Part shown: positions 11,163 through 62,732 of the stretch, piece by piece
Position numbering within the stretch: position 1 is the first letter of the stretch
Layout of the letters: each line of letters opens with the position of its first letter
Origin: Macrostomum lignano
Lineage: Eukaryota
Reading direction: 5' to 3'
DNA length: 64,000 nucleotides
Assembly (NCBI GenBank): GCA_002269645.1
Contig: NIVC01000571.1
Coordinates: 310,001 to 374,000, forward strand
Program-made: the position numbers and the translations under genes
Notes under the pieces: generated by a model
What the model saw: only the letters and a program-made list of their open reading frames with translations
The model's database searches: none
Told to the model about the DNA's origin: nothing

Positions 11163-11927
11163 TCAGAGGCCCAGCAGGCGCGGAACGTCAGCCAGGGAGC
11201 TCACAATGTGCGTGGCGCCGGCCTCTCGAAGCAGCTCGGCGTTGCCGACCCCGCTGAGGACGCCGACGCAGGCGGCAAGTCCGGCGTTGCGGCCAAGTCG
11301 CATGTCGGTGCCGGTGTCTCCCACCATGACGGCGCGGGCGGGCGCGGTGCCGAGCCGGGAGCAGACGGAAAGCGCCGCGCTGGCGTGCGGCTTCGGCTGG
11401 ACGTCCGGGTCGTCACCGCAGGCCGCCGCACCCACGAGGGGCTGCAGGCCGCCGCGGTCGAGCGCCGCTTCCGTCTCGGCCCGGTCGTCCGAAGTGCAAA
11501 GGCCGATGAGGAGCCCCGCAGCGGTCAGTCGCTCGAACGTCTCTCTGGTGCCATCAATGAAGCGAAGGCGACCGCGGTCGAGCTCGCAGCCGAAGGTGAC
11601 GCGGCGCACGGTGGCCTCGGCGAGCTCGGCGCTGACACCGCTCTCAACGGCCAGCTGCACGAGCGCATCAGCAATGTCCTTCTTGGTGCCCTCTGCTAGC
11701 AGACCGGGGCCCGTGCGCCGGGTCTCGGGGTCCACACCGAGGCGCCGCAGGATGGGCAGTTGAAGGTCCTGACGGTCTAGAAGCCGGGTGATCTCGCTGG
11801 CCACCTCCTCGGCCCAGGGCGACCACATGGCATGGAAACAGACCACCGTGCCGTCCTTGTCAAACAGCACGCAGTTGATGTCGCTGAGAGGCTGCTCCAG
11901 CTCCAGCTGCGGGGACTCCACGGGCAT
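11163..11927 (-). CDS. HAD-superfamily hydrolase (phosphoglycolate-phosphatase-like), single exon
   Basis: Motif I FDKDGT, motif II TSD, motif III PKP, motif IV GDTGTD and a GVLSG tail. True ATG at 11927 (MPVES); the ORF track extends to a non-ATG codon at 11951. Confidence 0.88.
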   Translation of the reverse strand: MPVESPQLELEQPLSDINCVLFDKDGTVVCFHAMWSPWAEEVASEITRLLDRQDLQLPILRRLGVDPETRRTGPGLLAEGTKKDIADALVQLAVESGVSAELAEATVRRVTFGCELDRGRLRFIDGTRETFERLTAAGLLIGLCTSDDRAETEAALDRGGLQPLVGAAACGDDPDVQPKPHASAALSVCSRLGTAPARAVMVGDTGTDMRLGRNAGLAACVGVLSGVGNAELLREAGATHIVSSLADVPRLLGL

Positions 11928-12541
11928 TTTTCTGAGGCTTATCAGGCGCACACTTTGAGAGGCCGAGACGGGAAGCTCAGCGCAGGCTGGGCGCTTCGTT
12001 TAAAGTTGCGGAGCTCCGCTGTCCAGCTAGGATTCTTGGTCACGTGATCCGAATGGAAGCCGAGAAATCTGCAGCAAGTTGCTCAGGAGAACTTTTCCTT
12101 CCTCTCTGCACTCTGTCCCCTGAGTACACTGGTGCACTCTGAATCGGTCGGGCAGGCAGAGATGGAGAAAGCGCTGAGCTGCTCCTGTGCGGGAGGATCT
12201 GGATTGAACTGGCTGGGGAGGCTGTGATGAAGGATGAAGGCTGGGCTTTCAAGTGCTCTGCTTGCCTGCCTAAGAAGTGACAAGATGCACTTAGGAGTGG
12301 AAAAATGCTTTGAGTTCGTCAGCTTTCTCAAGTATTTCTCCCCCGCGCACAGTCTACTGCGGAAGAAGTGCTGCAAATGTATTTGAAAATCTCTGGAATC
12401 AACCTACTGATTTTTATATATTTAAATTTGTTTAAATTCACTAAATTTTACTATGGAAAACTATTTTTCATCGCGTTGATGCTCGAATTGTGACAGTAAC
12501 CAATGAAAATAATTTAATGATATGTGAAGCAGTTGTAGAGT

Positions 12542-14766
12542 CTAAGAGCCGTCCGAAGTGCCGGCCTGGCCATTCTTAGGCGAAGAAGGCCGGCGCCACC
12601 TGAGGCCGCCGCCTCCGTCGGCGTCGGACCGGAAGCCGGCCGCAATGGCCTCGATGGGGCGGCCCTTGGTCTCGGGCAGGCAGCAGAACAGGAACAGCAG
12701 GAAGGCGGCCGTCAGGACGGAGAACGGCAGGAACAGCAGGCTACCCAGGTGCTTCACGAGCACCGGGAACACCAGGCCGACCGCGAAGTTGGCCAGCCAG
12801 TTCACCAGCACTCCGATGGCGTTGGCCGCCGACCGCGCCTCCTGCTGGAACATCTCCGAGATCATCAGCCAGGGAATGGAGCCCGGGCCCAGAGCGAAGA
12901 ACACCACAATGAGCAGGGCAAAGCAGATGCTGGCGTAGGTGAGAGCGCCGGCCGGCGTGGCGGCTGCGCTGCGGCTGTGCAGGCTGAAGCAGATGGTGAA
13001 GCCCACGGAGCTGACGAGCACGCCGAGCAGGCCGGTCAGGTGCAGGCAGCGTCGGCCCACCCGGTCCATCAGCGGCACCGTCACGCCGGTCATCGCCACC
13101 ATCACGCAGCCGACAGCCACCGTGGCAAACTTGGACGCCTGCGGACTGGCACCGGCCGCCTCGAACAGGTCGCTGGAGTAATAGAAGATCACGTTGATGC
13201 CGGACAGCTGCTGGGACAGGTGCAGCACCAGGCCGATGAGCAGCGGCCGGCGGAGCTCCGGCTGGGAGCAGAGCTTTGCCGCCGTTGCTGACGATGAGGC
13301 CGACGACCCAGTGGACCGCTCGGCGTCGATCTCGGCCAGCTCCGCGTCCACGAAATCGTGACCCCGTAGAGTGGCCAGCGCGGACCGGGCTGCTGCCTCG
13401 GAGCGCCGGGTGAGCAGGAGGTGGCGCGGGCTCTCCGGGCAGCAGGGCAGCAACGCCAGCTGCAGGAGGCAGGGCGCGGCTGACAGGGCGAACAGCAGCG
13501 GCCAGAGGCCCGGCCGCCCCAGCAGCGAGTCGGTGCTGGCTACCTGGGACAGCAGAAGTCCGGACACCACGCCGAGCTGGTTGAGCACGCCGAAGCCGCC
13601 GCGGAGTCGCCTGGGCGCGGTCTCGCTGATGTAGAGCGGCACAACGCTGGTGTACACGGCGCTGCAGAACCCGGTGGCGAGGCGACCCAGCACCAGCAGC
13701 TCTGGACTGGAGGCGACGCTCGACAGGCTGCAGGCGATGGCGGCCGCGATGCCGAAGCCGCTGTTTCCGAGCAGTGCGCGGGAGCGGCCGAGCCTGCAGG
13801 AGAATGGGGAAGCCAGGTGGTGCGCTGTAGCTGTGCAGCACGGACTTTTGTAACTAAAGGCAGGCAGTCACTGCCATCCAAAAAGCGAAAAGTGCTTCCT
13901 TAGGCCCAGTAGGACTTTGCACAGCGGGTTCAAATTCTACTACTTATCAGTAAAATACACTGCCCACTTGTCTCTATGCAGATGTGCCAGTAGTGCGCTA
14001 TAGTAGTACGCGAGACCAGGATTGTTTGTATTATTTTGTGCGCTGCATGAGCTCAGGAATGTTCTGCCGAGCCCGAGGAGATAAGTATTCTCATAATTAA
14101 TACAATGTGCAGCCGGCTACTGCAGCGAGTGCGAACCAGATTGCGCCAGTGCAGGTCAGCACGTTGTTGGAAGCACGTGTTTCAAGTGAGTCACTGCTCT
14201 GACAAGCCTTATGAACATTTCCGACAATTTTGTGTGCGTAAGACAGTCAACAAGTTCTTGTTCCCCTGCCTGTCGATACCAAATACATGTAGGCTTTCGG
14301 TACTCAGGAAAGATTCAAAGCGATCATGCAGATCAACAAAATAATTACACATTAGAGACTCCCAGCGGAGACTCACTCAACCTCAAATCAGAACACAGAA
14401 CTCGACCTGCCCACACCTGTCAGCGAGGCAGCCGCCAGTCAGGGCGCCGCCCATGCCTCCAATGGCGAAGATGGAGACCACGAGAGACCACAGCAGCTCC
14501 AGCTGGTAGTCGCTCAGCTGCCGGTCGAACCGGTCCGCCACAGACTGGTTGAGAAAGCTGACGATGCCGTCCTTGGGGTTGTTGATGACGCCGGTGTTCC
14601 AGCCGAAGTGGACGGCGCCCCAGAAGGCGGCCAGCACGGAGAGCGCCAGGCGCCAAGTGACTCGGTCGCGACTGTCCTGAACTGCGCTGACAGCCGCTTC
14701 GGGGGCGGCTTTGGGGGCCGCCTGAGAGGCGGAGAGCAGCTTCTGTTCGGAACGCTCGCTCTCCAT
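12542..14766 (-). CDS. SLC2A: Facilitated glucose transporter, GLUT/SLC2A class I-like (~533 aa, 2 exons)
   Basis: Exons 14766-14417 and 13793-12542 (AG|GTGTGG...CTGCAG|G, phase 2, giving LADRLGRSR). Motifs FGWNTGVIN, PESPR, QQLSGINVIFYYS, GPGSIPW and PETKG. Confidence 0.93.
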
Positions 14767-17141
14767 CGGAAACTATGCCGGCTCTCTGACTAGTGCAGTA
14801 CCTGCTGTAGTGAGTCTGGTTGCTCTCTGTGTTATCTTCTCTCTCCTCTTGCCCAGCTCTGTCTCGTTTGTCACCCAGCCCACTTTTATTGGCACGACTG
14901 ACGCGTCTCGCCAGTGCGCCGGCGGCCACCCCTCCGCCAACACAAGAGCCACTCCGGAGCAGGCAGCGAGAAGAAGATGACCCACATTTAGCTCTGCAGG
15001 CCCTCTGGAGCCTCCTACCCAGCCGTTTCCCTCCTCGCCTTCCCTCCGCTGCTCTCAGACAGCAGCTCTCTTCCGGTTGAACGGCCGGAATGGTTTGCTT
15101 GCATCGAGCAGGCAGATGGATCAGCGTCAAACTACAGTTTCCTGTACCGCCTTGAGCTTAGGGATTAATGCCTGCCTTCCTGTCTGAACCGGTTCAAAGT
15201 CACTTCTCTGCAAGCCTCTGTGAGCAATGCCATGTGAAAGACCTACGTGAGAAATACGGTTGCCGAGAAAGTAGAGTAAATTTGCTTTTCAATCCCATAG
15301 AAATGCAAACAGACTGCAAGCAGAAGAGAAAGAGAAGCATCTTATCAAGTCCTTCAATTTCTGTTTACAGACAACTCGGCAAGCTGCTGGGTCGGCCAGC
15401 TGCAGAGCCCCAGGGGGTCGAGCCAGAATCTTCTTTGTGAACGAATTATGCCCCCCTCACTAACCCGACACGACCTCCTCCAGGAGCCGCTTATTAACCC
15501 GAATTTCGAAGCCTGGGGGACACTCGTAAAAATTGTTTCAATTAAAACAAAACACGAACTCTCTTCGCACGATCCAGAGAGGAAAATGTTTCATTTGAGT
15601 ATTTACGGTAACCAGAAAGGCTGCTTGAGTTCAACTCTTCTGTAACAGTAATATACAGCATAATTAAATAATAATAACGAAAACAGCAAGGCTTATTTAT
15701 GTATCCGTTTAATGCGTGTGCTGCTTAAAGTTCGTCAAAACAAACGATCGAAAGCCTATCCATAGAATTCTAGATAACGCCGCCTGTTAGTTATCTGTTA
15801 TTTATCTAGAATATGGCCTATCATAGGCTGACAAGTGACAAAGGTTAAAGCCATTCTCCGATTGATCCTCTAAAGCTGGGATTTTCATCCTCTGTCACTT
15901 CATTCGGGTCCATGAGAATTGCCCGCCGAGGTTTTCCCCGCAATGCTTTTTTCTGCAGCGCATTTAGCAATGTTTAGTAAGTTTTAATAAAGAGATTAAC
16001 GTTTCGATGGTAACTGCATATCAAATACTTATTTTTCTTGTTTTCATTTCTATATGCATACAGGGCTACATCTGTGAGCTATCAATTCATGCATATGCCA
16101 TGTCGATTTGTCTCCTAAATCTCTTTATTAAGACTTACTACGAGCTAAGTATGGGAGGGGCAATTAAGACAAAAGCTGCCGCATTGCTGGCAAATCTCGT
16201 GCCCCCATTTAAACGTCTTTAACGTTTCAGTAAATTAAAGCAGGCTTTAAGCGAATGGAATAAGATCGAGGCATAAGAACGAGTATAACTCATAACTAAC
16301 GCCAATTTAATGCTACTACTGATGTATTGCACTCATATTCCAGCTGATACATAGTTAGTTCGGAGACCCTTAAACGTTATGAATCAATAAGTCATGCTGG
16401 TGCTCAGTCTTACCCTTGGTTCCCACCAGCCAGCGGAAGCGATAATAGATGTTAAACTATCGCGTTATTAATAATACGAGCCAATTCCCCCACACACAAA
16501 CCCTACAAAAGTCTTCAGCATCAGATGACGCGCCGTTCCCAGACTCGCAATTCCGGCTGATTCCCACGGAACCCCTCGCTGGTGCGTCAGCTGAAGTAAC
16601 ATGGTATTAAATATATAGCTGAATCCCCGCCCCACATTAAACACATAAAGACACTTTAAAGTGGAAGCAGACTTTTAGGGCGGCCTGCATTCGCCCTTTA
16701 CAATGCCGTCATCAAGCTTTTGTAAGAGTGCAGCTATCCACAACTGCCACTCTCCACCATGCTCTGATAACACTGCACTTTTCCGAATTCCCTAATCTAT
16801 TCTTAATAGTCTCTTTAGTACAACTCACTCAGGTTCATCTGCCCTTCATGTCTGTGTTAACTCTGTCGAGCCTAATCTTCAGTACAACTCACTGAGCCAC
16901 CTACCTGTCTTCCGCTCGGCTGCCTTCTGATTAATTTATCACCTCGTCCCTCTTGGGTTATCGCCTCTTCTCTAGTTAAGATGAAAACATCGAGAATAAA
17001 CATGAAATACGAGAGCATGCCAGATGCAAAAGAAGTCAAATGCATTCTGCGGCCTCGTATTAAAAGCCTTGCTCTCTTTTTCACCTAAAAGTGTCTTTTT
17101 CACCTTGCATTTCACCTCAACGACTCTTCTCATGCCCGCAG

Positions 17142-25800: not shown

Positions 25801-28800
25801 GCTTGAATACCGTTAGCTGCAGTACCTTAATGAGGCTCAAGGGAGTTTTGAAATTATTGTAAAGAATCTGCTCTCAATAGAATTTCGGAAGCGTCTCGCT
25901 ACTACTATTAGTAGTTTCCTGCCTGGCATTTTAACCCCCTCTCAAACCCGCCGGCTGCAGGTGCTCCACCCTCCGCACCCAGCTGGAGGCCATGCGCTCC
26001 GAGTACCGCCAGGCCGGGCCCGAGCGCCTGTCCGAGCTGTTCGACCACCTGCTGGCCGAGCTGGCCGGCCTGGACAACCGGCAGCGGCCGTCAGGTGGCG
26101 GCGCCAGCGGCGGTTTTCGCGTCTCCGCCCGCTGGGAGAAGCGCGCCAAGAAGGCGGCCAGGCGGACCGGCCTGGCGGTGCGGCTGCTCCGCTCCGTGCG
26201 CGGCGAGCCGGCGGCTGCGGAGTTTTGGCGCCGTCTGGCCGCCTGCCTGCCGCGCGGCTGCCACGAGGCGCTCGGCCTGCTGCGCGAGCTCGCCCTGCTG
26301 CCGCCCGACTTCGCCGCTCCCGACGCCGCCGACTCTGCCGCGGTGGCCGCTTCTGATATGGACGCCGCGGCGGCCTCCGTCTCCGCCGTGTCTCTGGAGG
26401 AGGCCGAGGACGCGTCTGGCGCCTCCGCTTCCGCCACTGCGACTGCCGCTCCTGCCGCTGCCGCTGTTATGCCCAACGAGCTGCAGGTTCGTTTTGATGA
26501 CCCTGCCTTGTTGCTAGGGCCTCTGGATATGAGATTTTTGCTAGGGTCTCTGGATGTGAGAGTGTTGCTAGGGTCTCTGAAAATGAGATTGTTTCCAAGG
26601 CCTCTGGATATTGGATTGTTGCTAGGGTCTCTGGATGTGAGATTGTTGCTAGGGGCTCTGGATGTGAGATTGTTGCTAAGGGTCTCTGGATGTGAGATTG
26701 TTGCCAGGGTCTCTGGATGTGAGATTGTTGCTAGGGTCTCTGAAAATGGGATTGTTGCCAAGGCCTCTGGATATTGGATTGTTGCTAGGGTCTCTGGATG
26801 TGAGATTGTTGCTAGGGTCTCTATATATGGGATTGTTGCTAAGGCCTCTGGAGATGGGATTGTTGCTAGGGACTCTGGAAATGGGGTTGCAGCTAAGGAA
26901 CTCCTAAAGTGCCAGGGCATTATCATTAGGGACATTCGAAAGAGGATCACTATATGGTACTAGAGTGAGGGTTATGAAAGCTGTAGAGGACAATGTTGAT
27001 TTTGAAGCACTAAAAAGAATTGTTTCTAGACAAATTGAATATTACGCTCGTATATCCCGTTCCTCACTCCTCAGCTGTGCCTGACCCGACTGTGGCGCGG
27101 CGAGCTGTCCCAGCCAGCTCCCGACCTGCTGGTGACGACCTGCGACGAGCGCAGCTTCCGCGTGCACTCGCTGGTGCTGGCGGGCCGCTGCCCCTGGATT
27201 CGGCGGGTGCTGCAGTCCGGCATGTGCGAAGCGCTGGAGCGGCACCTGCGGCTGCCGGACTGCGAGGGGCCGCTGGTTGAGCGGCTGCTGGAGTTTCTGT
27301 ACACTGGCGTGCTGCCGGTGGGGGAGGACGCCTCCACGGATTGGCTGGTGCGGCTGGGGATGCCAGGGCTGGGCTGGGGAGTTTTCAGCCTCTGACAGGC
27401 TGCAATAGTGTGACCACTAATAGGATAGTCATACTTGAGCACATTTGGTTGCTAAGGAAGTTTCTAATGGGTTTTCCATCCTTGGTTGCTAGGGACGACA
27501 ACCCCTGGTTTCATACAGAGGCGCCTTCCGTGGTTGCTAGGGACGCACACTGGTTGCTAGGATCGCACTGGTTGCTAGAGGCGCACACTGGTTGCTAGGG
27601 GCGCACACTGGCACACCGCTGAGTTCTAGTGCTCTTCAATTTATTGGGGCACGCTGAATTGGTTGCTAGGGCCGCCCCTTGGTTGCTAGGGTCGCCACTC
27701 TGTTTAAGATTGCTTGATGCAATGATGGTTGGTTTTTGCTGTCCCTCAACCGCAGGTGGACATGCTGCTGCTGGCCGACCGGTTCGAGCTGGAGCGCCTG
27801 TCGAAGATCTGCGCCAGCGCCCTGGTGGCCCGGGTCGGCTTCGAGACCGCCGTGCCGCTGCTGGCGCTGGGCGAGCGGACCGGCCAGGCAGCGCTGATGG
27901 ACGCCGCCTTCGACTTCCTTCAGCGGAACATCAACGCCGTGTCCGTTGACGATGTGAGTCTGGGTGCGAGCTGATGACCGAGTGACAGGCTGATGACCGA
28001 GTGACAGGCTGATGACCGAGTGACAGGCTGATGGTCGAGTGACAAGTTGATATATAGGAGTGACAGGCTGATGGTCGAGTGACAAGTTGATATATAGGAG
28101 TGACAGGCTGATGGTCGAGTGACAAGTTGATATATAGGAGTGACAGGCTGATGGTCGAGTGACAAGTTGATATATAGGAGTGACAGGCTGATGGTCGAGT
28201 GACAAGTTGATATATAGGAGTGACAGGCTGATGGCCGAGTGACGGATTGATATATAGGAGTGTCGGGCTGATACAAGAGTGACAGGCTGATATGAGGGGG
28301 AGTCAAAAAGTAATGATAGTTTCGTTCTCACGAGTGTCAAACTTCAAATGGGAATCTAATTTTCTACATAGTTCCCCTTCAGGGTCAGGCACTTCTCCAT
28401 GCGGTGTCGCCATCTCTCCAGGCCGTTCGCGTAGAACTCGGGAGGCTGTGCAGTAGCCTTTTGGCAGCCTCTTTGTCCTCATGTTGGACTCCTTTGATTG
28501 CTTCCTTCAGCTTAGGAAACAAGAAAAAGTCCAAAGGAGCCAAACCAGGGCTATATGGAGGATGCTGGGGATTTCCCAGCGGAAATCTCGCAGGGCTTCA
28601 CGGCAGAGCCGAGAAGTGTGAGCTGGTGCATCGTTGTGGTGAAAGAGAATCCGGGTGCAGCTTGCCAGGCCGCTTTTGTCCAGTTCGGAGCGGAGCTTTC
28701 GCAGAAGCGACTCATAACAGGTGGCATTGATGGTCTTCTGGCTTTCCAGGAAGTCCAGCATCACCAGTCCCTCAACATCCCAGAAGATCGTCGCCAAGAC

Positions 28801-32170: not shown

Positions 32171-33715
32171 ACAGCCTGACATCTGCATAAGTTTGTGAAG
32201 CGCTAGTAGTATTTTTTAGCTTAGTATCTTAGCGTTGGGGAGCAAAAAATGCAGTGCAAGTTTTGTAATAAACTAGTAGTTTTAAAAGTAAAAAGTAAAA
32301 CAAAAGTAGTTTTATCTGCGAAAGTCCTTATTGTGTAAGATAATTATAATATTTTGTTTATACACACTGAAATGACTGTATTTTTAACTTATACAGTTTC
32401 TTCGAAACGCATAATTGAGCAGCAATTAAAATAATTAGTCAACTACCCGACGAGGGATAATTGGCTAGCTAGTTACTCATGAGTCATATCCAACTAAAAC
32501 TGGCCTTTTTAACTGGAAAAGCTAGATAGGCAACTCACTTCATCCAGTTGATACTACCTATTCTTTCTTCATTTAACTCGTATTGAAGGACTTATTTATC
32601 TAGCTCCAGTTTCTAAACTGAAAAGAAACCTGGCAGATAAATTACTTCTTGTTATACATAAAAATGATTTTAGGATGAAATTTTATTGATGCATTACTAT
32701 ACTATTTTACCCTCATACTCTACAATTGCTCAGATTTGTTGAGTAGGTATAACATATTTTATAACAACTTGCTTAACATTTGCACTCCATGTCTTTTTAT
32801 TGCACTTTCATTTATTTTGTTAGCTTAATCTTTTTTGCTTTGCAATCTTATAATGTATCTTTATTGTTAAATTTTGCTATAATGGTTAAACCTTTCCATA
32901 TAATATAAGACCAAATTTCATTATATAACCATAGGCAATAGTTAGATAGAGTTTAATATTTTAATATTGTTATTTTTTTCTAGAATTTATGTTAGCATTA
33001 GTATAGGATAGGCCCTAGGATTTTTCATAGTTACCAAATATGTAGCATATGTATAATTATAATACTATTGATTTCAAAATATATGTAGTTATATTTATAT
33101 TTTATCAAGTAATTTACTTTAAGATCTCTTATGTAGAAAATATACTTAGCAACATAGAAAAGTTGCCATCATAGAAGATTTTATCTGTGGTTGCAACTTA
33201 GCAACACCATATTATGAATATGGTAGACTTGATTTAAGAGATAAAGTGGAGTGGTGTGCAAGGGTTAGATGGATTAAAGCTACCCCAATCAGTTTTCTTA
33301 TATCTTTTTTAGAATAGTCTAAGAGAAATTGTTAATGGTACAATGTGTGGCAAATTTTCAATGTTGCTAGGTGTACTTTTATATCAAAAAGAAAATGCTT
33401 GTAGAAAAGTTTTGGATTATTTAAAGCCTGCTTGTTATTATTTTTTGCATAAAAATATCATATTTAATCATTTAGGCCTAGAAAGTGTATATAATAAAAA
33501 ATTATTATAATTATTTAATATTTGATAGTATAGAGTGGTCAATCGTATGTAGCTTTTTATTTTAGAATATTTTATAATAATAATAGTTTTTAACCTAGCC
33601 ATCAATCACATTTTAATCTGTCATAGATTTGACATTTTCTAGCAATATAAACAAATTACTTTTATGAAATAAATCAAAAGTCTTCAACATCCCTCAGACA
33701 GCAGCATCCCAGGAG

Positions 33716-39654
<5,939 letters not shown>

Positions 39655-40390
39655 CTGTTGTGACTGAGTCATGGCCCTCCCACACTGTTGTGACTGGGTC
39701 ATGGCCCTCCCACACTGTTGTGACTGGGTCATGGCCCTCCCACACTGTTGTGACTGGGTCATGGCCCTCCCACACTGTTTTCACTGGGTCATGGCCCTCC
39801 CACACTGTTTTGACTGGGTCATGGCCCTCCCACACTGTTGTGACTGGGTCATGGCCCTCCCACACTGTTGTGACTGGGTCATGGCCCTCCCACACTGTTG
39901 TGACTGGGTCATGGCCCTCCCACACTGTTGTGACTGGGTCATGGCCCTCCCACACTGTTTTGAGTGGATCATGGCCCTCCCACACTGTTGTGACTGTGTC
40001 ATGGCCCTCCCACACTGTTGTGACTGGGTCATGGCCCTCCCACACTGTTGTGACTGGGTCATGGCCCTCCCACACTGTTTTGAGTGGATCATGGCCCTTC
40101 CACACTGTTGTGACTGGGTCATGGCCCTCCCACACTGTTTTGAGTGGATCATGGCCCTTCCACACTGTTGTGACTGGGTCATGGCCCTCCCACACTGTTG
40201 TGACTGGGTCATGGCCCTCCCACACTGTTGTGACTGGGTCATGGCCTCACACACTGTTGTGAGTGGGTCATGGCCTCCCACACTGTTGTGACTGGGTCAT
40301 GGCCTCCCACACTGTTTTGAGTGGGTCATGGCCCTCCCACACTGTTGTGACTGGGTCATGGCCCTCCCACACTGTTTTGACTGTGTCATG
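39655..40390. repeat. 30-bp minisatellite starting at the SPCA stop (CTGTTGTGACTGGGTCATGGCCCTCCCACA)
   Basis: About 24 tandem copies. Confidence 0.95.
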
Positions 40391-41199
40391 GAGATATTTT
40401 GGCGAGTTCGTGGCCTTAGTTGGCCCCTTGGTTCGGGCCATGACCCAGTTTTTGCTATATTAAATATTATTAAATGTGCTGTTTTCAAAATATTTTAATT
40501 CTCCATAATTTCACTCAGCCCCTGCCCTGCTATGCAGCCAGGAATTCCATCGATTTTCGCACGTTTTTTTTCTAATCAAAATTTTCAGTACATCTGCACT
40601 TTTATTCCACAGCCAGTCTTCCATGTTTATTGCCTGTCCTGCATAATAAAACTGCTGCTGGTTTTACAGCAAATATTTACAGCTATTTACAGCTATTTAC
40701 AGCTATCCTGCATGCCTGTCTATTTATACCATTGTTGCTATGCTCAACTCTTTGTCTCGGTGGCTGCTTTCTGCTTGCCAATGAATAAAATGCTGAGTAG
40801 TTCTTTGAGTCGGGTCCGGGACAGCTCTGTCAGGTCGGAGCAATCGATCGACCGTGTACTTTATAGATGTAGTGCGCCCAGGCTCCGGCCGTGCTAGTCA
40901 CCTGTGCTTTTGTTTTTCTTCACAGGGCATGATGCATTTTTATAGCCAATTGTTTATTAATGATTATGGACATTCTCCCTGTACTTTGTTGGTGTCTGTG
41001 CATGCCGGGCTGCGCGCCGTGTTTGGCCGCAAAATTTCTGCTATTCTCATAATATACAGTGGATATTGAGCATGCTTTGATGCTGCACTGGGACTTCATC
41101 TGATTTCAAGTTGTTTGAGTCATTTCTCATGGGGTTCGAGACCAGGAGCTCTTAGCGATTGTTCATTTAGCTTTCTGGGGAAATAGTATAGTGGGTTTC

Positions 41200-41770
41200 T
41201 GTTGCAGTTGCTATGTAGTTTCTATGCAGTTGCTGTGTAGTTTCTATGCAGTTGCTATGCAGTTTCTATGCAGTTGCTGTGTAGTTTCTATGCAGTTGCT
41301 ATGCAGTTTCTATGCAGTTGCTGTGTAGTTTCTATGCAGTTGCTGTGTAGTTTCTATGCAGTTGCTATGCAGTTTCTATGCAGTTGCTGTGTAGTTTCTA
41401 TGCAGTTGCTATGCAGTTTCTATGCAGTTGCTGTGTAGTTTCTATGCAGTTGCTGTGTAGTTTCCATGCAGTTGCTATGTAGTTTCTATGCAGTTTCTAT
41501 GTAGTTTCAATGCAGTTTCTGTGTAGTTTCTATGCATTTGTTGTGTGGTTTCTTTGCAGTTGCTATGAAGTTTCTATGCAATTGCTGTGTAGTTTCTATG
41601 CAGTTGCTTTGTTCTCGTATTTTATATGCAGTTCGTTGCCAAGCCGCTTCTGAGATTACTATGCAAATGCTAAGCCGTTTTTATGAGGTTACTATGCAGT
41701 TGCTAAGCTGTTTCTATGAAGTTACTATGCAGTTGCTAAGCAGTTTCTACGAGGTTACTATGCAGTTGCT
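41200..41770. repeat. 11/22-bp minisatellite (TGCAGTTGCTATGTAGTTTCTA)
   Basis: Tandem copies, decaying toward the RABGGTB acceptor. Confidence 0.9.
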
Positions 41771-41813
41771 TACACAAGCGTTGCCATCCGAACGCGCCCG
41801 CAAATTCCCGCAG

Positions 41814-44445
41814 CATCGCCCAGCCACCGACATTTCCCTGCCGGCGGACGCGCCGAAGCAGCTGCTGCCGGAGAAGCACGCCGACTTCCTGTTGCAGTAC
41901 TGCAGCAGCCAGGACAACTACGAGTACGTCATGACCGAGTACCTGCGCATGTCCGGCCTCTACTGGACCGCCAGCGCCCTGGACCTCCTTGGCCGCCTGC
42001 CCGACCTGCGACAGCGGATGGACGCCGCCGCCTTCTTGCGGGACTGCGCCAGGCCCGATGGCGGCTACGGGCCGGCGCCCGGACACGACAGCCACCTGCT
42101 GTACACCCTGAGCGCCGTGCAGGTGAGCAGGTGAGGGTGCGGCGGAATGGGTGCGGCTGGGGTGTCAGGTTAGGACTGGGGTGTCAGGTTAGGACTGGGG
42201 TGTCAGGTTGGGACTGGGGTGTCAGGTTGGGACTGGGGTGTCAGGTTGTGACTGGAGTGTCAGGTTAGGACTGGGGTGTCAGGTTGGGACTGGGGTGTCA
42301 GGTTGTGACTGGAGTGTCAGGTTAGGACTGGGGTGTCAGGCTAGGACTGGGGTGTCAGCCTGGGACTGGGTGTCAGGTTGGGACTGGAGTGTCAGGTTAG
42401 GACTGGGGTGTCAGGCTAGGACTGGGGTGTCAGCCTGGGACTGGGTGTCAGGTTGGGACTGGGGTGTCAGGTTGGGACTGGGGTTTTCGTTGTGTCAGGA
42501 TGGGACTGGGGTGTCAGGTTGGGACTGGGGTTTCGGGGTGTCAGGATGGGACAGGGGTGTCAGGCTAGGACTGGGGTGTCAGCCTGGGACTGGGGTGTCA
42601 GCCTGGGACTGGGGTGTCAGCCTGGGACTGGGGTGTCAGCCTGGGACTGGGGTGTCAGGCTGGGACTGGGGTGTCAGGACGAAATTTGGGATGTCAGGAT
42701 TGGGATCTTGTCTCACACAATTGTCAGCTCCAGCCCTCCGCCTACCCCAGGTGGCTCTGCTGTTCGACCTGCGGGACTCCCTGGACGCCGGGGCCATCGC
42801 GGGCTTCGTCCGCGGCCTGCAGCGGCCTGACGGCAGCTTCCAGGGCGACCGGTGGGGCGAGGTGGACACCCGCTTCAGCTTCTGCGCGCTGGCCGCGCTG
42901 TTCCTGCTGGGGCTGGGCGACCGCCTCGACGACCTTGTCGACGCTCGCGCCGCAGGCGACTTCGTGCTGACCTGCGCCAACTGGGACGGCGGCTTCGGCA
43001 CCCGGCCGGGCAGCGAGTCGCATTCCGGACAGGTGCGGATCTTGCCTGGCTACTCACAGTAGGCAGTGCAGTGTCCCAGCTACTCACAGTAGGCAGTGCA
43101 GTGTCCCAGCTACTCACAGTAGGCAGTGCAGTGTCCCAGCTACTCACATTAGGCAGTGCAGTGTCCCAGCTACTCACAGTAGGCAGTGCAGTGTCCCAGC
43201 TACTCACATTAGGCAGTGCAGTGTCCCAGCTACTCACAGTAGGCAGTGCAGTGTCCCAGCTACTCACAGTAGGCAGTGCAGTGTCCCAGCTACTCACAGT
43301 AGGCAGTTCAGTGTCCCATCCCAGCTACTCACAGTAGGCAGTGCAGTGTCCCATCCCAGCTACTCACAGTAGGCAGTGCAGTGTCCCATCTCAGCTACTC
43401 ACAGTAGGCAGTGCAGTGTCCCAGCTACTCACAGTAGGCAGTGCAGTGTCCCAGCTACTCACAGTAGGCAGTGCAGTGTCCCATCCCAGCTACTCACAGT
43501 AGGCAGTGCAGTGTCCCATCTCAGCTACTCACAGTAGGCAGTGCAGTGTTCCAGCTACTCACAGTAGGCAGTGCAGTGTCCCATCTCAGCTACTCACAGT
43601 AGGCAGTGCAGTGTCCCATCTCAGCTACTCACAGTAGGCAGTGCAGTGTCCCATCTCAGCTACTCACAGTAGGCAGTGCAGTGTTCCAGCTACTCACAGT
43701 AGGCAGTGCAGTGTCCCATCTCAGCTACTCACAGTAGGCAGTGCAGTGTCCCATCTCAGCTACTCACAGTAGGCAGTGCAGTGTCCCATCTCAGCTACTC
43801 ACAGTAGGCAGTGCAGTGTTCCAGCTACTCACAGTAGGCAGTGCAGTGTCCCATCTCAGCTACTCACAGTAGGCAGTGCAGTGTCCCATCCCAGCTACTC
43901 ACAGTAGGCAGTGCAGTGTCCCATCTCAGCTACTCACAGTAGGCAGTGCAGTGTCCCAGCTACTCACAGTAGGCAGTGCAGTGTCCCAGCTACTCACCGC
44001 AGGCGCCCGCCCGCAGGTGTACTGCTGCATCGGCGCGCTGTCCATCCTGGGCCGCCTGCACGAGCTGGACGTGGACCGCACGGCGCTGTGGCTGGCGGAG
44101 CGGCAGCTGGCAAGCGGAGGGCTGAACGGCCGGCCGGAGAAGCTCCCGGATGTGTGCTACTCCTGGTGGGTGCTGGCCTCCCTGGCCATGCTCGGCCGGC
44201 TGTCCTGGATCTCCGGCGAGCGGCTGCTGCGCTTCGTGTGCGCGGCGCAGGACCCGGAGGCTGGCGGCATCGCCGACCGGCCCGGCGACCTCTGCGACCC
44301 CTTCCACACCCTGTTCGGCCTGGCCGGCGCCTCCCTCCTGCGGCTGGGCGGTGACTCGCTGAAGGCCATCAACCCGACTTTCTGCCTGCCAGTTGACTGT
44401 CTGGACAGGCACGGACTGCGGCTGCCGCTCTGGACTGGCGACTGA
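41814..44445 (+). CDS. RABGGTB: Rab geranylgeranyltransferase (type II) beta subunit; initiator Met not located
   Basis: Exons 41814-42122, 42751-43032 and 44017-44445 (all phase 0). EKHADF...[45 protein letters not shown] and [11 protein letters not shown] match the conserved family motifs. Confidence 0.95.
42165..42710. repeat. 19-bp intronic minisatellite (GGACTGGGGTGTCAGGTTG)
   Basis: Tandem copies. Confidence 0.9.
43048..43997. repeat. 30/35-bp intronic minisatellite (CAGCTACTCACAGTAGGCAGTGCAGTGTCC)
   Basis: About 29 tandem copies fill the intron. Confidence 0.95.
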
Positions 44446-44449
44446 CCGT

Positions 44450-44892
44450 GTGGGACTGGCGTATAGGGACTGGCGTGTGGGACTGGCGTGTGGGACTGGC
44501 GTGTGGGACTGGCGTGTGGGGACTGGCGTGTGGGGACTGGCGTGTGGGACTGGCGTGTGGGACTGGCGTGTGGGACTGGCGTGTGGGGACTGGCGTGTGG
44601 GGACTGGCGTGTGGGACTGGCGTGTGGGACTGGCGTGTGGGACTGGCGTGTGGGGACTGGCGTGTGGGGACTGGCGTGTGGGACTGGCGTGTGGGACTGG
44701 CGTGTGGGACTGGCGTGTGGGGACTGGCGTGTGGGGACTGGCGTGTGGGACTGGCGTGTGGGGACTGGAGTGTGGGACTGGCGTGTGGGACTGGCGTGTG
44801 GGGACTGGCGTGTGGGGACTGGCGTGTGGGGACTGGCGTGTGGGACTGGCGTGTGGGACTGGAGTGTGGGACTGGCGTGTGGGACTGGCGTT
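44450..44892. repeat. 13/14-bp minisatellite (GGGACTGGCGTGT) after the RABGGTB stop
   Basis: Tandem copies. The unit resembles the final codons TGGACTGGCG. Confidence 0.93.
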
Positions 44893-45418
44893 GTGGCATT
44901 ATGGATGAGTGTGGGACGATGCATACGAGGGTGTGGGATGATGGCCTTAAAGTCTGGGAATCGGGGATGATGATTGTGCGGCTATAAGCACTATACATAG
45001 GGTCAGTGTGGTCGCACCGGAAGTGACCTTCATAACAAATAATTATTTTGCATTCCGCTGCTTAAATACGCTGTCCTCCGCTTGTCCCTGCATGCTGTGC
45101 CCGATTCGCTAAACAATTTCTACTGCTAGTAATGATAAATATATGAACAAATACCAAGCATAACTACTGTGTAAGTAAGTAGTCTGTGCAATCATAAAAC
45201 TCTTGGTTGTCTCGCATTATCGATTTTGTTTTTAAGTGCTGCAACTTGCAAGTTTTTCGTACATCCGTAATCTGGAGAAGTCTGCCAGATGCTGTTTTTT
45301 CAGGAACTTCCTAAGCTTCCCAAATCAAATGCGAGTGAAGTTGCCATATTTACAATTTTGCCAGTTCAAATCTTCCAATCCTACTCGCACTTCTTAAGGC
45401 CTACTTGATTACACGGCT

Positions 45419-52509: not shown

Positions 52510-54175
52510 ATGCCAGCTGGAATTCTAGCACTGCTGTTCGGCTGCATGGCTGCTGTGACAGGTGAGGCTTCTCATGCACGTTGCAGAAGCATTGCCGGTC
52601 AAATGCACTGAGTGCCTGCGAAACATCAAGAATTGAAAATTTTTAGAAGTTGTCAACCACATTTGTTAACTGCTGTGATGGCGCAGCCACAGTTTGCAAT
52701 ACACAGAATCTCCTCAAACCAACAGGCGCCCACCAATCCAGTCTCTTCACCGCTGTCACCGGACCCGTCCTGATCGGCAACGCCTCCAGCAGCGAACTCG
52801 TCAACCTGACCGGCGTCCAGACCCGGCTGGAGTGTCTGGCAGCGTGCCAGCGGAAGGGCTGCCTGCTGGCTTCGCTCATCCCCAGCTCGCGCGTCTGCCA
52901 GCTGCTGCTGCTCAACGACGCGTCTCAGGCGCCGGGACCGGCCGGGACTCACGTGCAGAGACTCGTGGGCTCCGAGCCCGGCGCCAGGCTGTGGACGGCC
53001 GAGAACTTCACGGAGCTGATGAGGAAGAGGATGCTGAATGTCACCATTGAGCTCAGAAGTGAGGAAAAGCCAATGTTTGCAAATTTTTCTGTGCTTCGAG
53101 CATTTGCTGCACCTTGACATCTGATCTGCAGCGCCCTCTTTCACTGCAGACAGCAGCACGGGCAGGGCCGGCTCCATCCAGTCCGTGACGATCCCCTCGA
53201 CCGGCTGCTACCGGATCGAAGTGTCGGGCGCCAGAGGCGGCACCAACTCCTTCTCAGGCAAGGCTGGCGGCAGCGGCGCCTTCGTGTCCGGCGCCTTCAA
53301 CCTGACGGCCGGCACCCAGCTGAGCGTCGTGGTCGGACAGGCTGGCGGTCCGCCCAGCAACTTGTACGCTGGTGGCGGCGGAGGCGGCGGCAGCTTCGTG
53401 TACCGGACGGCAGACGAGCTGCTGCTGGCTGCAGCCGGAGGCGGCGGTGCCGGGACCTACAGCTCAGCTGGTGAGTAAAAATGGCTTCAGGACAACTGGT
53501 TAAAATATATTCTCCAAAAGCTCTCTGATGTTTAAGTGCTTAGGGTATTCCTGTGTCTGGTTTTCAATTGATGTCGGTTTTTGAGAGACTTACTTTAGTA
53601 AAATCAGCTCCAAACACAAAACAACTAACCAAATAGGGCACTCATACTATTGAATATGTTGAAAGTAAGCCACGAGCACCGAATTCGCAGGCCTGCCCGG
53701 AGAGGCCGGCGTCAACGGCTCCGTCGCGAATCCGAGCGAAAACAGCCACGGCGGCAGCAACGGACAGCCGGGCTTCCACGACTCCAGCGCCATGACCGGC
53801 AACCAGAACCTCGCTGGCTGCGGCGCCGGCTGGCTGGGGAAGCCGGTGTGCACCAGGCGGGGACCGGACGACGGTGACGGAGGCGGCAGTCGGGCCGAAG
53901 GCTGGCTGGGCGGCGACGCCGGCGGCTCCAACACCGGCGACGGCGGGTTCGGCGGTGGCGGAGGCGGCGGCACGGCGAACCCCAACTATGGCGTTGCCGG
54001 GGCCGGCGGCGGCTTCAGCGGAGGCGCCACCAGCTTCTCGGGGAGCCCTCCAGGAGGTGGCGGCGGCTCCTTCTGCTCCGGCAGCGGCTGCAGCGGCACC
54101 ACTGGCGGCAACGCCGGCCAGCACGGCCTGGTGGTCATCCGGCTGGTCGATCCGCTGAGCAACTCTTGCGAGTGA
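52510..54175 (+). CDS. Secreted protein with a PAN/apple-like module and an ALK/LTK-type glycine-rich domain (~396 aa, 4 exons)
   Basis: Exons 52510-52561 (signal MPAGILALLFGCMAAVTG), 52726-53058 (CLAACQRKGC...C), 53150-53470 (YRIEVSGARGG...GQAGG...GGGGGGSFV...LLLAAAGGGG) and 53691-54175 (GGFGGGGGG...GAGGGFSGG...GGGGSFC...GNAGQHGLVVI). All junctions are phase 1. No TM helix or kinase domain. Confidence 0.82.
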
Positions 54176-61700: not shown

Positions 61701-62732
61701 ACACGCAGCTGCTCGGAGCAGGCGGTTTCGGCCAGGTGTACAAGGCGTTCACCGATAAGCAACAGACTGTGGCTGTCAAGATCGTCAAGCTGGAAGGTGC
61801 CAGCAGTGCCAGCCTGATAGACGAGGCCATCGAGAAGGAGAACGCGGAGATCTCAGTCCTGAAGGCCGTCCGGCACCCGAACATCGTGCAGTTCCTCAAG
61901 TCTGAGCGCATCAAGAAGGGCGAGCTGTGTATCTTTACCGAGCTGATCTCTGGCCACAGCCTCTCTGAGCTGATGCAGCTGCAGCGACGGCCCTTCGATG
62001 AGGCAGCAGTGAGGAACTTCTCCAAGCAGGTGAGATCCCACACCACCCCATCCAGCAGTGAGGGACTTCTCCAAGCAGGTGAGATCTCACACCACCCCAT
62101 CCAGCAGTGAGGGACTTCTCCAAGCAGGTGAGATCCCACACCACCCCATGCAGCAGTGAGGGACTTCTCCAAACAACTCAGATCCCACACCACCCCATGC
62201 AGCAGTGAGGGACTTCTCCAAGCAGCTCAGATCCCACACCACCCCTGCTCACTCGCTCCCCAACTCACAGATCTGCACAGCGCTCCACTTCCTGCACAGC
62301 CGCAGTCCCGTCACCCTGCACCGTGACATCAAGTGCTCCAACATAATGCTCACCAACGAGGGCCTCATCAAGCTGATCGACTTCGGTGTCGCCAAGGAGG
62401 TCTTCGCCACAATGTGCAGCACCAAGACGGCGCACGGCACCCTCCATTTCATGGCTCCTGAGCTGTTCAGTGAGGACGAAGGAATCGTGTACTCACCCAA
62501 GACTGACGTGTGGGCTTTCGGCTGCTCCGTGTTCGAGATGCTGGAGATGAAGCCTCCGAACTGGCAGTTCAGGTGGCAGCAGATCCCGCTGAGGATTCAC
62601 AACCACGACATGCCGCAGCTACCGGCGGAGGCCTCCGCCCTGCTGAGGGACTTCTACGGACGGTGCGTCCAGAGGGAGCCGAGGAGGCGAGCGGCCGCCG
62701 CGGAGCTGCTGGAGCACAAATTTCTGCAGTGA
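58795..62732 (+). CDS. Ankyrin-repeat protein kinase (N-terminal ANK array plus STE/MAP3K-like kinase; ~945 aa), intact copy 2
   Basis: ANK exon 58795-60779 (six 213-bp/71-aa units). Donor GG|GTGAGC (phase 2) joins the acceptor TTTTCCAG|T at 61638. Kinase exons 61639-62029 and 62271-62732 carry [30 protein letters not shown] and DVWAFG. Confidence 0.8.
60960..61500 (-). mobile_element. Ty3/gypsy gag fragment, antisense within the ANK-kinase intron
   Basis: GETIDSWHARM...CDFGELRNSIIRDQLV...LRRRLLQE, followed by a frameshifted zinc knuckle CYRCGQSGH...CSNCGKPN. No pol or LTRs seen. Confidence 0.75.
62006..62245 (+). repeat. 49-bp tandem repeat (5 copies) duplicating an exon end plus splice donor
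   Basis: GCAGTGAGG starts at 62006, 62055, 62104, 62153 and 62202. Copies 1-3 contain AAGCAG|GTGAGA. Confidence 0.9.

Follow-up and report, generated by a model that had tools for sequence, protein, structure and literature searches.

The RABGGTB gene of the flatworm Macrostomum lignano very probably takes its start codon from the trans-spliced leader

How is translation started on a conserved housekeeping gene whose first coding exon is exactly one residue, the initial methionine, too short? The question is raised by RABGGTB, the gene for the beta subunit of Rab geranylgeranyltransferase, in a 64,000-nucleotide stretch ("the window") of the genome of the flatworm Macrostomum lignano (assembly Mlig_3_7, NIVC01000571.1:310001-374000). 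Very probably RABGGTB has no start codon of its own in the genome, and the AUG of the spliced leader (SL), trans-spliced at position 41814, acts as initiator. The replacement of an ancestral first exon, consisting of ATG alone, by the leader had been proposed in an earlier, sequence-only reading of this DNA; it is supported by gene structure, annotated 5' ends, an ancestral intron and the ATG at the end of the leader. From these we infer that the leader is joined at exactly 41814 and that its AUG is used by ribosomes.

In the deposited annotation the gene spans 41814-44445 on the + strand. It consists of three coding exons (Table 1), with 339 codons and a G+C content at third codon positions (GC3) of 0.92. 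The 339-aa translation from 41814 exactly matches PAA58622.1 and PAA80688.1, described as "BOX15_Mlig015963g2, partial", and is 100% identical to M. lignano proteins named geranylgeranyl transferase type-2 subunit beta; the source is therefore a trans-splicing flatworm, as the earlier reading presupposed. A human RABGGTB sequence, used as tblastn query, matches the window in three blocks, which were resolved into the three exons. Human residues 4-104 align to 41820-42125, the sole gap lying after residue 63: the gap-free fit to the human N terminus claimed from the sequence holds through that residue. Among the listed non-self matches, those with a source name are mostly geranylgeranyl transferase type-2 subunit beta, RABGGTB or PGTB2, and nearly all show 52-60% identity across 94-99% of the query. 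Pfam PF00432 (prenyltransferase alpha-alpha-barrel repeats) is assigned both to the identical proteins and to the called gene. The motifs PDVCYSWW and DPFHTLFG are present, in alignment with the human sequence; they presumably carry the Asp, Cys and His zinc ligands of the beta subunit (D238, C240 and H290 in the rat enzyme). Judged by its sequence, the product is the Rab geranylgeranyltransferase beta subunit (GGTase-II beta), of the enzyme that lipid-tags Rab proteins.

The + strand at 41800-41830 reads gcaaattcccgcag/CATCGCCCAGCCACCGAC, where the slash, here and in the following sequences, marks a splice junction, in this case 41813/41814. With wider upstream context the junction is ...aaattcccgcag/CATCGCCCAGCCACCGAC..., the AG being at 41812-41813 and the exon starting at 41814. 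The phase-0 acceptor CCCGCAG/CAT CGC CCA, on which the earlier reading was built, is borne out both by the sequence and by the annotated gene start. The N-terminal length was compared with that of about 100 metazoan RABGGTB orthologues starting with Met, whose N terminus, from placozoans and cnidarians to vertebrates and arthropods, has the form MGTPxKDVxI...LLxEKH. The worm has the lysine of the (E/D/Q)KH motif at position 21, whereas 58 of the about 100 orthologues have it at position 22, so that the claim of a single missing residue is sustained. Addition of the SL Met brings this lysine to residue 22, and the canonical N-terminal length is regained.

Could the start codon lie in a cis-spliced exon upstream? 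The neighbouring gene on that side is SPCA, for a secretory-pathway Ca2+-ATPase, whose stop codon had correctly been placed at 39654. No ATG/GT micro-exon had been noticed between this stop and the acceptor, and none is there: 39655-41813 contains 75 ATGs, none of them followed by GT. ATG/GC strings are found 24 times, every one inside a 30-bp minisatellite. No alternative AUG conserves the RABGGTB N terminus. A missed exon, with 5' untranslated region (5'UTR) and ATG, joined to 41814 from far upstream, through a non-GT donor or from unassembled DNA, would match the ancestral RABGGTB arrangement exactly; flatworm cis and trans splicing often use common acceptors (PMC12582326; PMC5832876), and the ATG/GC strings offer a non-GT junction. 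The latter, however, would read ATG/GCCCTC, unlike the M. lignano donor consensus GT[G/A]AG (PMC8629364). Moreover, the RNA-seq-based annotation features no such exon in any of the three genomic copies of the gene, whose coding sequence (CDS) is labelled partial, and a separate M. lignano model set in UniRef also lacks the Met, starting with TDISL, from 41826, 2 nt past a second AG. With no ATG/GT up to the SPCA stop, such an exon is very improbable.

A single 35-nt SL, CGGTCTCTTACTGCGAAGACTCAATTTATTGCATG, is described in M. lignano, where about 30% of genes receive it (PMC8629364); the expectation of a leader ending in AUG is thus borne out for this species. When the SL is fused in silico to 41814, the predicted junction is TTATTGCATG/CATCGCCCAGCC, where CATCGCCCAGCC is the exon side, from 41814. 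In the modelled mRNA no ATG precedes that of the SL, which is in frame: the mature sequence reads ATG/CAT CGC CCA, translated as MHRPATD, and encodes a 340-aa product. The next ATG is the in-frame Met41, and no out-of-frame ATG precedes it. No SL RNA gene was found in the window, with up to 3 mismatches allowed.

The following course of events is proposed. RABGGTB and SPCA probably form one transcriptional unit of two genes, the RABGGTB pre-mRNA being its downstream part. Trans-splicing at CCCGCAG/C (41813/41814) would join to this pre-mRNA the 35-nt SL, whose last three bases are AUG, and the junction, ...UUGCAUG/CAU CGC CCA, would set the SL AUG in frame as codon 1. A 340-aa RABGGTB with canonical N-terminal length would result. 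The ancestral first exon (5'UTR, ATG and GT donor) would have been lost, with retention of the 3' splice site of its phase-0 intron; the SL mini-exon (leader, AUG and GU donor), having the same layout, would stand in for it.

Indications on the position of the SL site come from the annotated 5' ends. Two further RABGGTB copies are found in the genome, on NIVC01002353.1 (L002) and NIVC01002192.1 (L003), in addition to that of the window (L001). The deposited models of all three open at the homologous CAG/ acceptor, as 5'-partial sequences without Met. In the GenBank annotation, transcriptional units were cut by TBONE into mature mRNAs at SL-read peaks and poly(A) sites, and coding sequences were called by TransDecoder after the cutting (PMC5730564). 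Had a transcript extended farther upstream, one of the ATGs there would have opened a complete open reading frame (ORF). That the CDS of a "g2" gene is 5'-partial from its very first base, in an annotation cut at SL peaks, therefore implies an SL site at 41814. In L003 the CDS opens 2 nt past the AG, in another frame, owing to a 1-nt deletion in exon 1: since the 5' end is the same in a different frame, it is the transcript end, rather than an ORF boundary, that coincides with the AG. The way in which the annotation pipeline sets gene ends thus provides a strong, if indirect, indication for SL addition exactly at 41814. No entry for Mlig015963, Mlig011893 or RABGGTB is present in the supplements of the M. 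lignano papers searched.

The copies also allow a comparison of coding and non-coding sequence. Upstream non-coding DNA diverges by about 4% between them, while exon 1 is identical in L001 and L002, and 1 of 1020 bases differs over the full CDS. Minisatellite copy number varies among the copies; L002, for example, lacks one 33-nt unit upstream of the acceptor. The deletion in L003 (9999-10306) puts the first 73 residues of PAA60107.1 out of frame, and may denote either a pseudogenised copy or an indel of the long-read assembly.

Several observations weigh against initiation at the SL AUG. Its context (T at -3, C at +4) is weak under the vertebrate Kozak rule. The 340-aa protein starting with MHRPATD is absent from a collection of 15 billion proteins; so is a 357-aa extended form, MQLLTQ..., and these absences decide neither way. 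A search with exon 1 alone, for proteins starting with MHRPATD or from other Macrostomum species, was uninformative: 18 candidates were scored, and even the identical full-length proteins were not returned. The acceptor, CCGCAG, deviates from the most enriched trans-acceptor motif of M. lignano, [T/C]TNCAG, though this is found at only 44% of sites (9551/21754) (PMC8629364). Finally, an ATG at 41760 is in frame with the exon, 54 nt upstream of it, with no stop between, and the only substitution between copies in these 54 nt (TTC to TTT) is synonymous in that frame; being a single site, it has no statistical weight and no power to test constraint.

This last ATG has to be considered at greater length. 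The sequence-only reading had set aside the in-frame DNA upstream of the acceptor as minisatellite: the repeat (...CTATGCAG..., with 11/33-nt periodicity) is indeed present, but an open frame, with ATG 41760 as a rival start, had been overlooked. From 41814 the frame is open for 103 codons (41505-41813), back to a TAG at 41502, and contains eight ATGs (41532, 41565, 41598, 41661, 41667, 41694, 41727, 41760). The last, 18 codons before the exon, sits at the minisatellite's edge, and the next 45 nt or so are unique sequence. An mRNA made independently of trans-splicing, from a promoter in the spacer at 40.4-41.7 kb or by read-through, might be translated from it, or from one of the seven in-frame ATGs farther upstream, and an N-terminally extended protein, marked by the peptide MQLLTQALPSER if the start is at 41760, would then result. 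Both ATG 41760 and the open frame are preserved in all three copies, and partial trans-splicing is frequent among flatworm genes (PMC3510090; PMC12582326). Yet the frame is open because of the 33-nt periodicity of the outron repeat, of which it is a by-product.

Codon usage, evaluated by a model trained on RABGGTB exons 2-3 against a background of neighbouring non-coding DNA, also speaks against an extended protein. The 18 codons at 41760-41813 have a coding log-likelihood of -16.2 bits (GC3 0.67), and two 18-codon blocks farther upstream score -18.7 and -27.8 bits (GC3 0.50 and 0.44); the first 18 codons of exon 1, in contrast, score +16.7 bits (GC3 0.83) and the whole exon +79.6 bits (GC3 0.93). 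The sign of the coding likelihood thus switches at the acceptor. In addition, none of the three deposited copy models uses ATG 41760, all being 5'-partial from the acceptor; the N-terminal length kept from placozoans to vertebrates would be broken; and an unspliced leader would be burdened with dozens of upstream ATGs, in all frames (the 75 of 39655-41813). A start in the upstream frame is, on the whole, quite unlikely.

It may also be asked whether an SL joined at 41814 could leave its AUG unused, translation starting at Met41 (YEYVM/TEY, where the slash follows the Met) or at a non-AUG codon. The weak AUG context would favour this, as would the in-frame position of the next AUG, with no out-of-frame AUG before it. 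A second AG, at 41822-41823, lies 10 nt inside exon 1 (CGCCCAG/CC), and an SL joined there would have its ATG out of frame. The 40 residues bypassed by a start at Met41, however, hold a segment conserved in animals, DAPK.LL.EKHADF...YEY, are strongly codon-biased, and are identical in L001 and L002 in spite of the about 4% divergence of flanking DNA: conserved, biased and identical between copies, they are evidently translated. A schistosome SL AUG has, besides, been shown to initiate in such a context, as far as the work of Cheng et al. (2006) is rendered in PMC9851317. That the SL AUG is skipped, or that the second AG is used, appears extremely improbable.

Initiation at the SL AUG is also consistent with the history of the gene. 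The intron which the earlier reading placed right behind the ATG of vertebrate RABGGTB was found in a teleost, and in three other animals as well: in all four loci fetched, ATG alone makes up the coding part of exon 1, and an intron with a GT donor separates it from codon 2, which directly follows the acceptor. The junctions are ATG/GTAAGA ... tag/GGTACA in the mollusc Lottia gigantea, ATG/GTGAGT ... cag/GGTACC in the cnidarian Nematostella vectensis, ATG/GTGAGT ... cag/GGGACT in the teleost Pangasianodon gigas and ATG/GTAAGT ... tag/GGAACG in the placozoan Trichoplax sp. H2. From this distribution, the intron is ancestral to animals. An intron next to the ATG also fits odd N termini found in databases: QGTPQKD and LQGTPQKD in birds, SQGTS in Biomphalaria, SQGTP in Capitella. 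The two cis introns of the worm, after SAVQ and after SGQ, are at phase-0 positions common to the comparison taxa; the shared positions indicate that each of the three acceptors in M. lignano is a 3' splice site of ancestral origin. The first would accordingly be that of the ancestral intron after the start codon, deprived of the upstream exon and donor. Flatworm RABGGTB orthologues were sought by a representative search, in which the ten candidates named were from mites, a weevil, Trichinella, Capsaspora and protists, or were unnamed.

Some features of the comparison loci may be reported here. In Lottia (KB202656.1, L004 8179-9381) a 17-residue segment from a small exon (protein residues 104-120) is repeated 19 times, with 64-nt spacing; either exon-like copies are arrayed in tandem there or the assembly is at fault. 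In the 404-aa model of Pangasianodon gigas (L006 4001-17748) blocks of exons are duplicated: residues 141-213 and 230-309 match the same DNA twice, which suggests that the fish model is inflated by local duplication or mis-assembly; the upstream neighbour of the teleost gene encodes an acyl-CoA dehydrogenase. Directly downstream of RABGGTB, on the same strand, a PAPPA-like gene (Laminin_G_3, PAPPA, Sushi) is found in both Nematostella (L005 14608-17718) and Trichoplax (L007 10476-11265), a possible conserved microsynteny of cnidarians and placozoans.

The loss of the first exon may be related to the position of the gene behind SPCA, on the same strand. To judge from the g2 tag of RABGGTB, SPCA (Pfam domains and location in Table 1) would be BOX15_Mlig015963g1, the two genes sharing a transcriptional-unit number. 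The spacer, measured from the SPCA stop, is 2159 nt long, of which about 1300 nt are tandem repeat. The remaining, repeat-adjusted spacing of about 860 nt is below the 1-kb threshold used for calling M. lignano operons, which also requires the same strand and a trans-spliced downstream gene (PMC8629364); L003 bears the label g1, in a unit of its own. Plausibly RABGGTB forms a two-gene operon with SPCA, as its downstream cistron, a position which would explain the loss of its promoter and first exon.

SPCA, too, is annotated as 5'-partial: its CDS runs from the first base past an acceptor (atccctcag/; ccctcag/ACAGCA), without Met (window 33690-33720; L002 2595-2625). In its outron an in-frame TGA is present 11 codons upstream of the CDS start. 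Here, too, the ATG of the leader would lie in frame (MTAASQEM...); as a genomic ATG is present 6 codons on, however, the SL Met is not strictly required.

Each non-coding segment near RABGGTB and SPCA (window 39165-44896) is filled by its own long minisatellite, while the exons have a GC3 of about 0.92. Other GC3-rich, exon-like ORF blocks of the window are at 11166-14772 (-), 27039-27971 (+), 53125-54172 (+) and 62160-62729 (+). The minus-strand block contains ...FGWNTGVINNP..., which we take to be reminiscent of sugar transporters; the one near 62.2 kb carries a kinase-like motif.

Table 1. Coordinates, within the window, of RABGGTB, its upstream neighbour and the associated sequence elements
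Feature	Position	Strand	Description
SPCA, secretory-pathway Ca2+-ATPase	33698-39654	+	982 aa; Pfam Cation_ATPase/E1-E2_ATPase
26-bp minisatellite	39165-39449
30-bp minisatellite	39654-40391	+	24.7 copies; directly after SPCA stop
Two AATAAA hexamers, candidate SPCA poly(A) signals	40645, 40784 (40645-40789)	+	motif only
Outron minisatellite	41195-41767	+	11/22/33-nt unit ...TTTCTATGCAG...; ATG in each unit
Nearest in-frame genomic ATG, rival start	41760-41762	+	would add MQLLTQALPSERARKFPQ
3' splice site CCCGCAG, proposed SL trans-splice acceptor	41807-41813	+	same heptamer as exon 3 cis acceptor, 44010-44016
RABGGTB exon 1	41814-42122	+	103 codons, coding from first base (HRPATD...SAVQ); donor CAG/GTGAGC
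RABGGTB cis intron 1	42123-42750	+	GTGAGC...CCCCAG; 19-bp minisatellite inside; phase 0, after SAVQ
19-bp minisatellite	42157-42678		in intron 1
RABGGTB exon 2	42751-43032	+	94 codons; donor CAG/GTGCGG
RABGGTB cis intron 2	43033-44016	+	GTGCGG...CCCGCAG; 35-bp minisatellite inside; phase 0, after SGQ
35-bp minisatellite	43049-43988		in intron 2
RABGGTB exon 3	44017-44445	+	acceptor CCCGCAG/GTG; TGA stop at 44443-44445
13-bp minisatellite	44447-44896

Initiation at an SL AUG is already established in flatworms, namely in Schistosoma and Echinococcus, and M. lignano RABGGTB would be an unusually clean further case. In S. mansoni, according to the account of Cheng et al. (2006) given in PMC9851317, 28% of recipients have the SL AUG in frame, and the AUG is needed by over 40 cDNAs; in E. 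granulosus it is required for N termini matching conserved orthologues, and its usage is conserved within Neodermata (PMC3510090). The AUG is kept in almost all SLs of parasitic flatworms (PMC12582326). In the M. lignano literature searched, use of the SL AUG as start codon is not mentioned, and nothing relevant was found, in the literature searched, on a link between SL trans-splicing and start-codon introns. The point added here concerns this link: the SL acceptor would be the 3' site of the ancestral start-codon intron, and the SL would replace the exon made of 5'UTR and ATG one-for-one. RABGGTB would thus exemplify, base for base, the takeover of a whole ancestral exon by the SL: cap, 5'UTR and start codon. 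With an SL ending in AUG as an exact stand-in, the loss of an ATG-only exon would cost nothing.

It is possible, though rather doubtful, that genes with an ancestral first exon ending in ATG form a preferred, ancient class of SL-AUG-dependent flatworm genes. If so, once several putatively essential genes, such as RABGGTB, had switched, the AUG at the 3' end of the SL would have been fixed, and its near-universal retention in flatworms would be explained: a testable reason for the AUG at the 3' ends of flatworm leaders would be available. The dependence would be older than the divergence between Macrostomorpha and other flatworms, if planarians and Neodermata share the RABGGTB arrangement. On the practical side, use of the SL AUG would explain why a conserved housekeeping enzyme is labelled "partial" in M. 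lignano gene models and databases. The addition of the SL Met may make complete proteins of thousands of "5'-partial" M. lignano models, and M. lignano transgenes for such genes must either provide an ATG or retain the acceptor.

Three known systems may be compared with the worm gene. The canonical metazoan RABGGTB, with exon 1 made of 5'UTR and ATG followed by a phase-0 intron, has the same acceptor, in position and phase, and two further introns at positions identical to those of the worm (after SAVQ and after S[G/A]Q); in the worm, by contrast, exon 1 and its donor are gone, the intron has turned into an outron, and 6-7 further ancestral introns have disappeared. The SL-AUG mRNAs of Neodermata (Cheng, Cohen, Ndegwa & Davis 2006, J Biol Chem 281:733, as reported in PMC9851317; PMC3510090) resemble the mRNA proposed for RABGGTB: the leader terminates in AUG, this AUG matches the frame of the ORF, its Met is required to complete a conserved N terminus, and no other AUG is suitable. 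They belong, however, to parasitic flatworms, whereas M. lignano is a free-living member of the early-branching Macrostomorpha. In SL-resolved operons, both in C. elegans and in M. lignano (PMC8629364), the downstream gene is on the same strand as the upstream one, as RABGGTB is with SPCA; in those of nematodes the SL gives cap and leader only, while on the worm RABGGTB mRNA it would add the first codon too.

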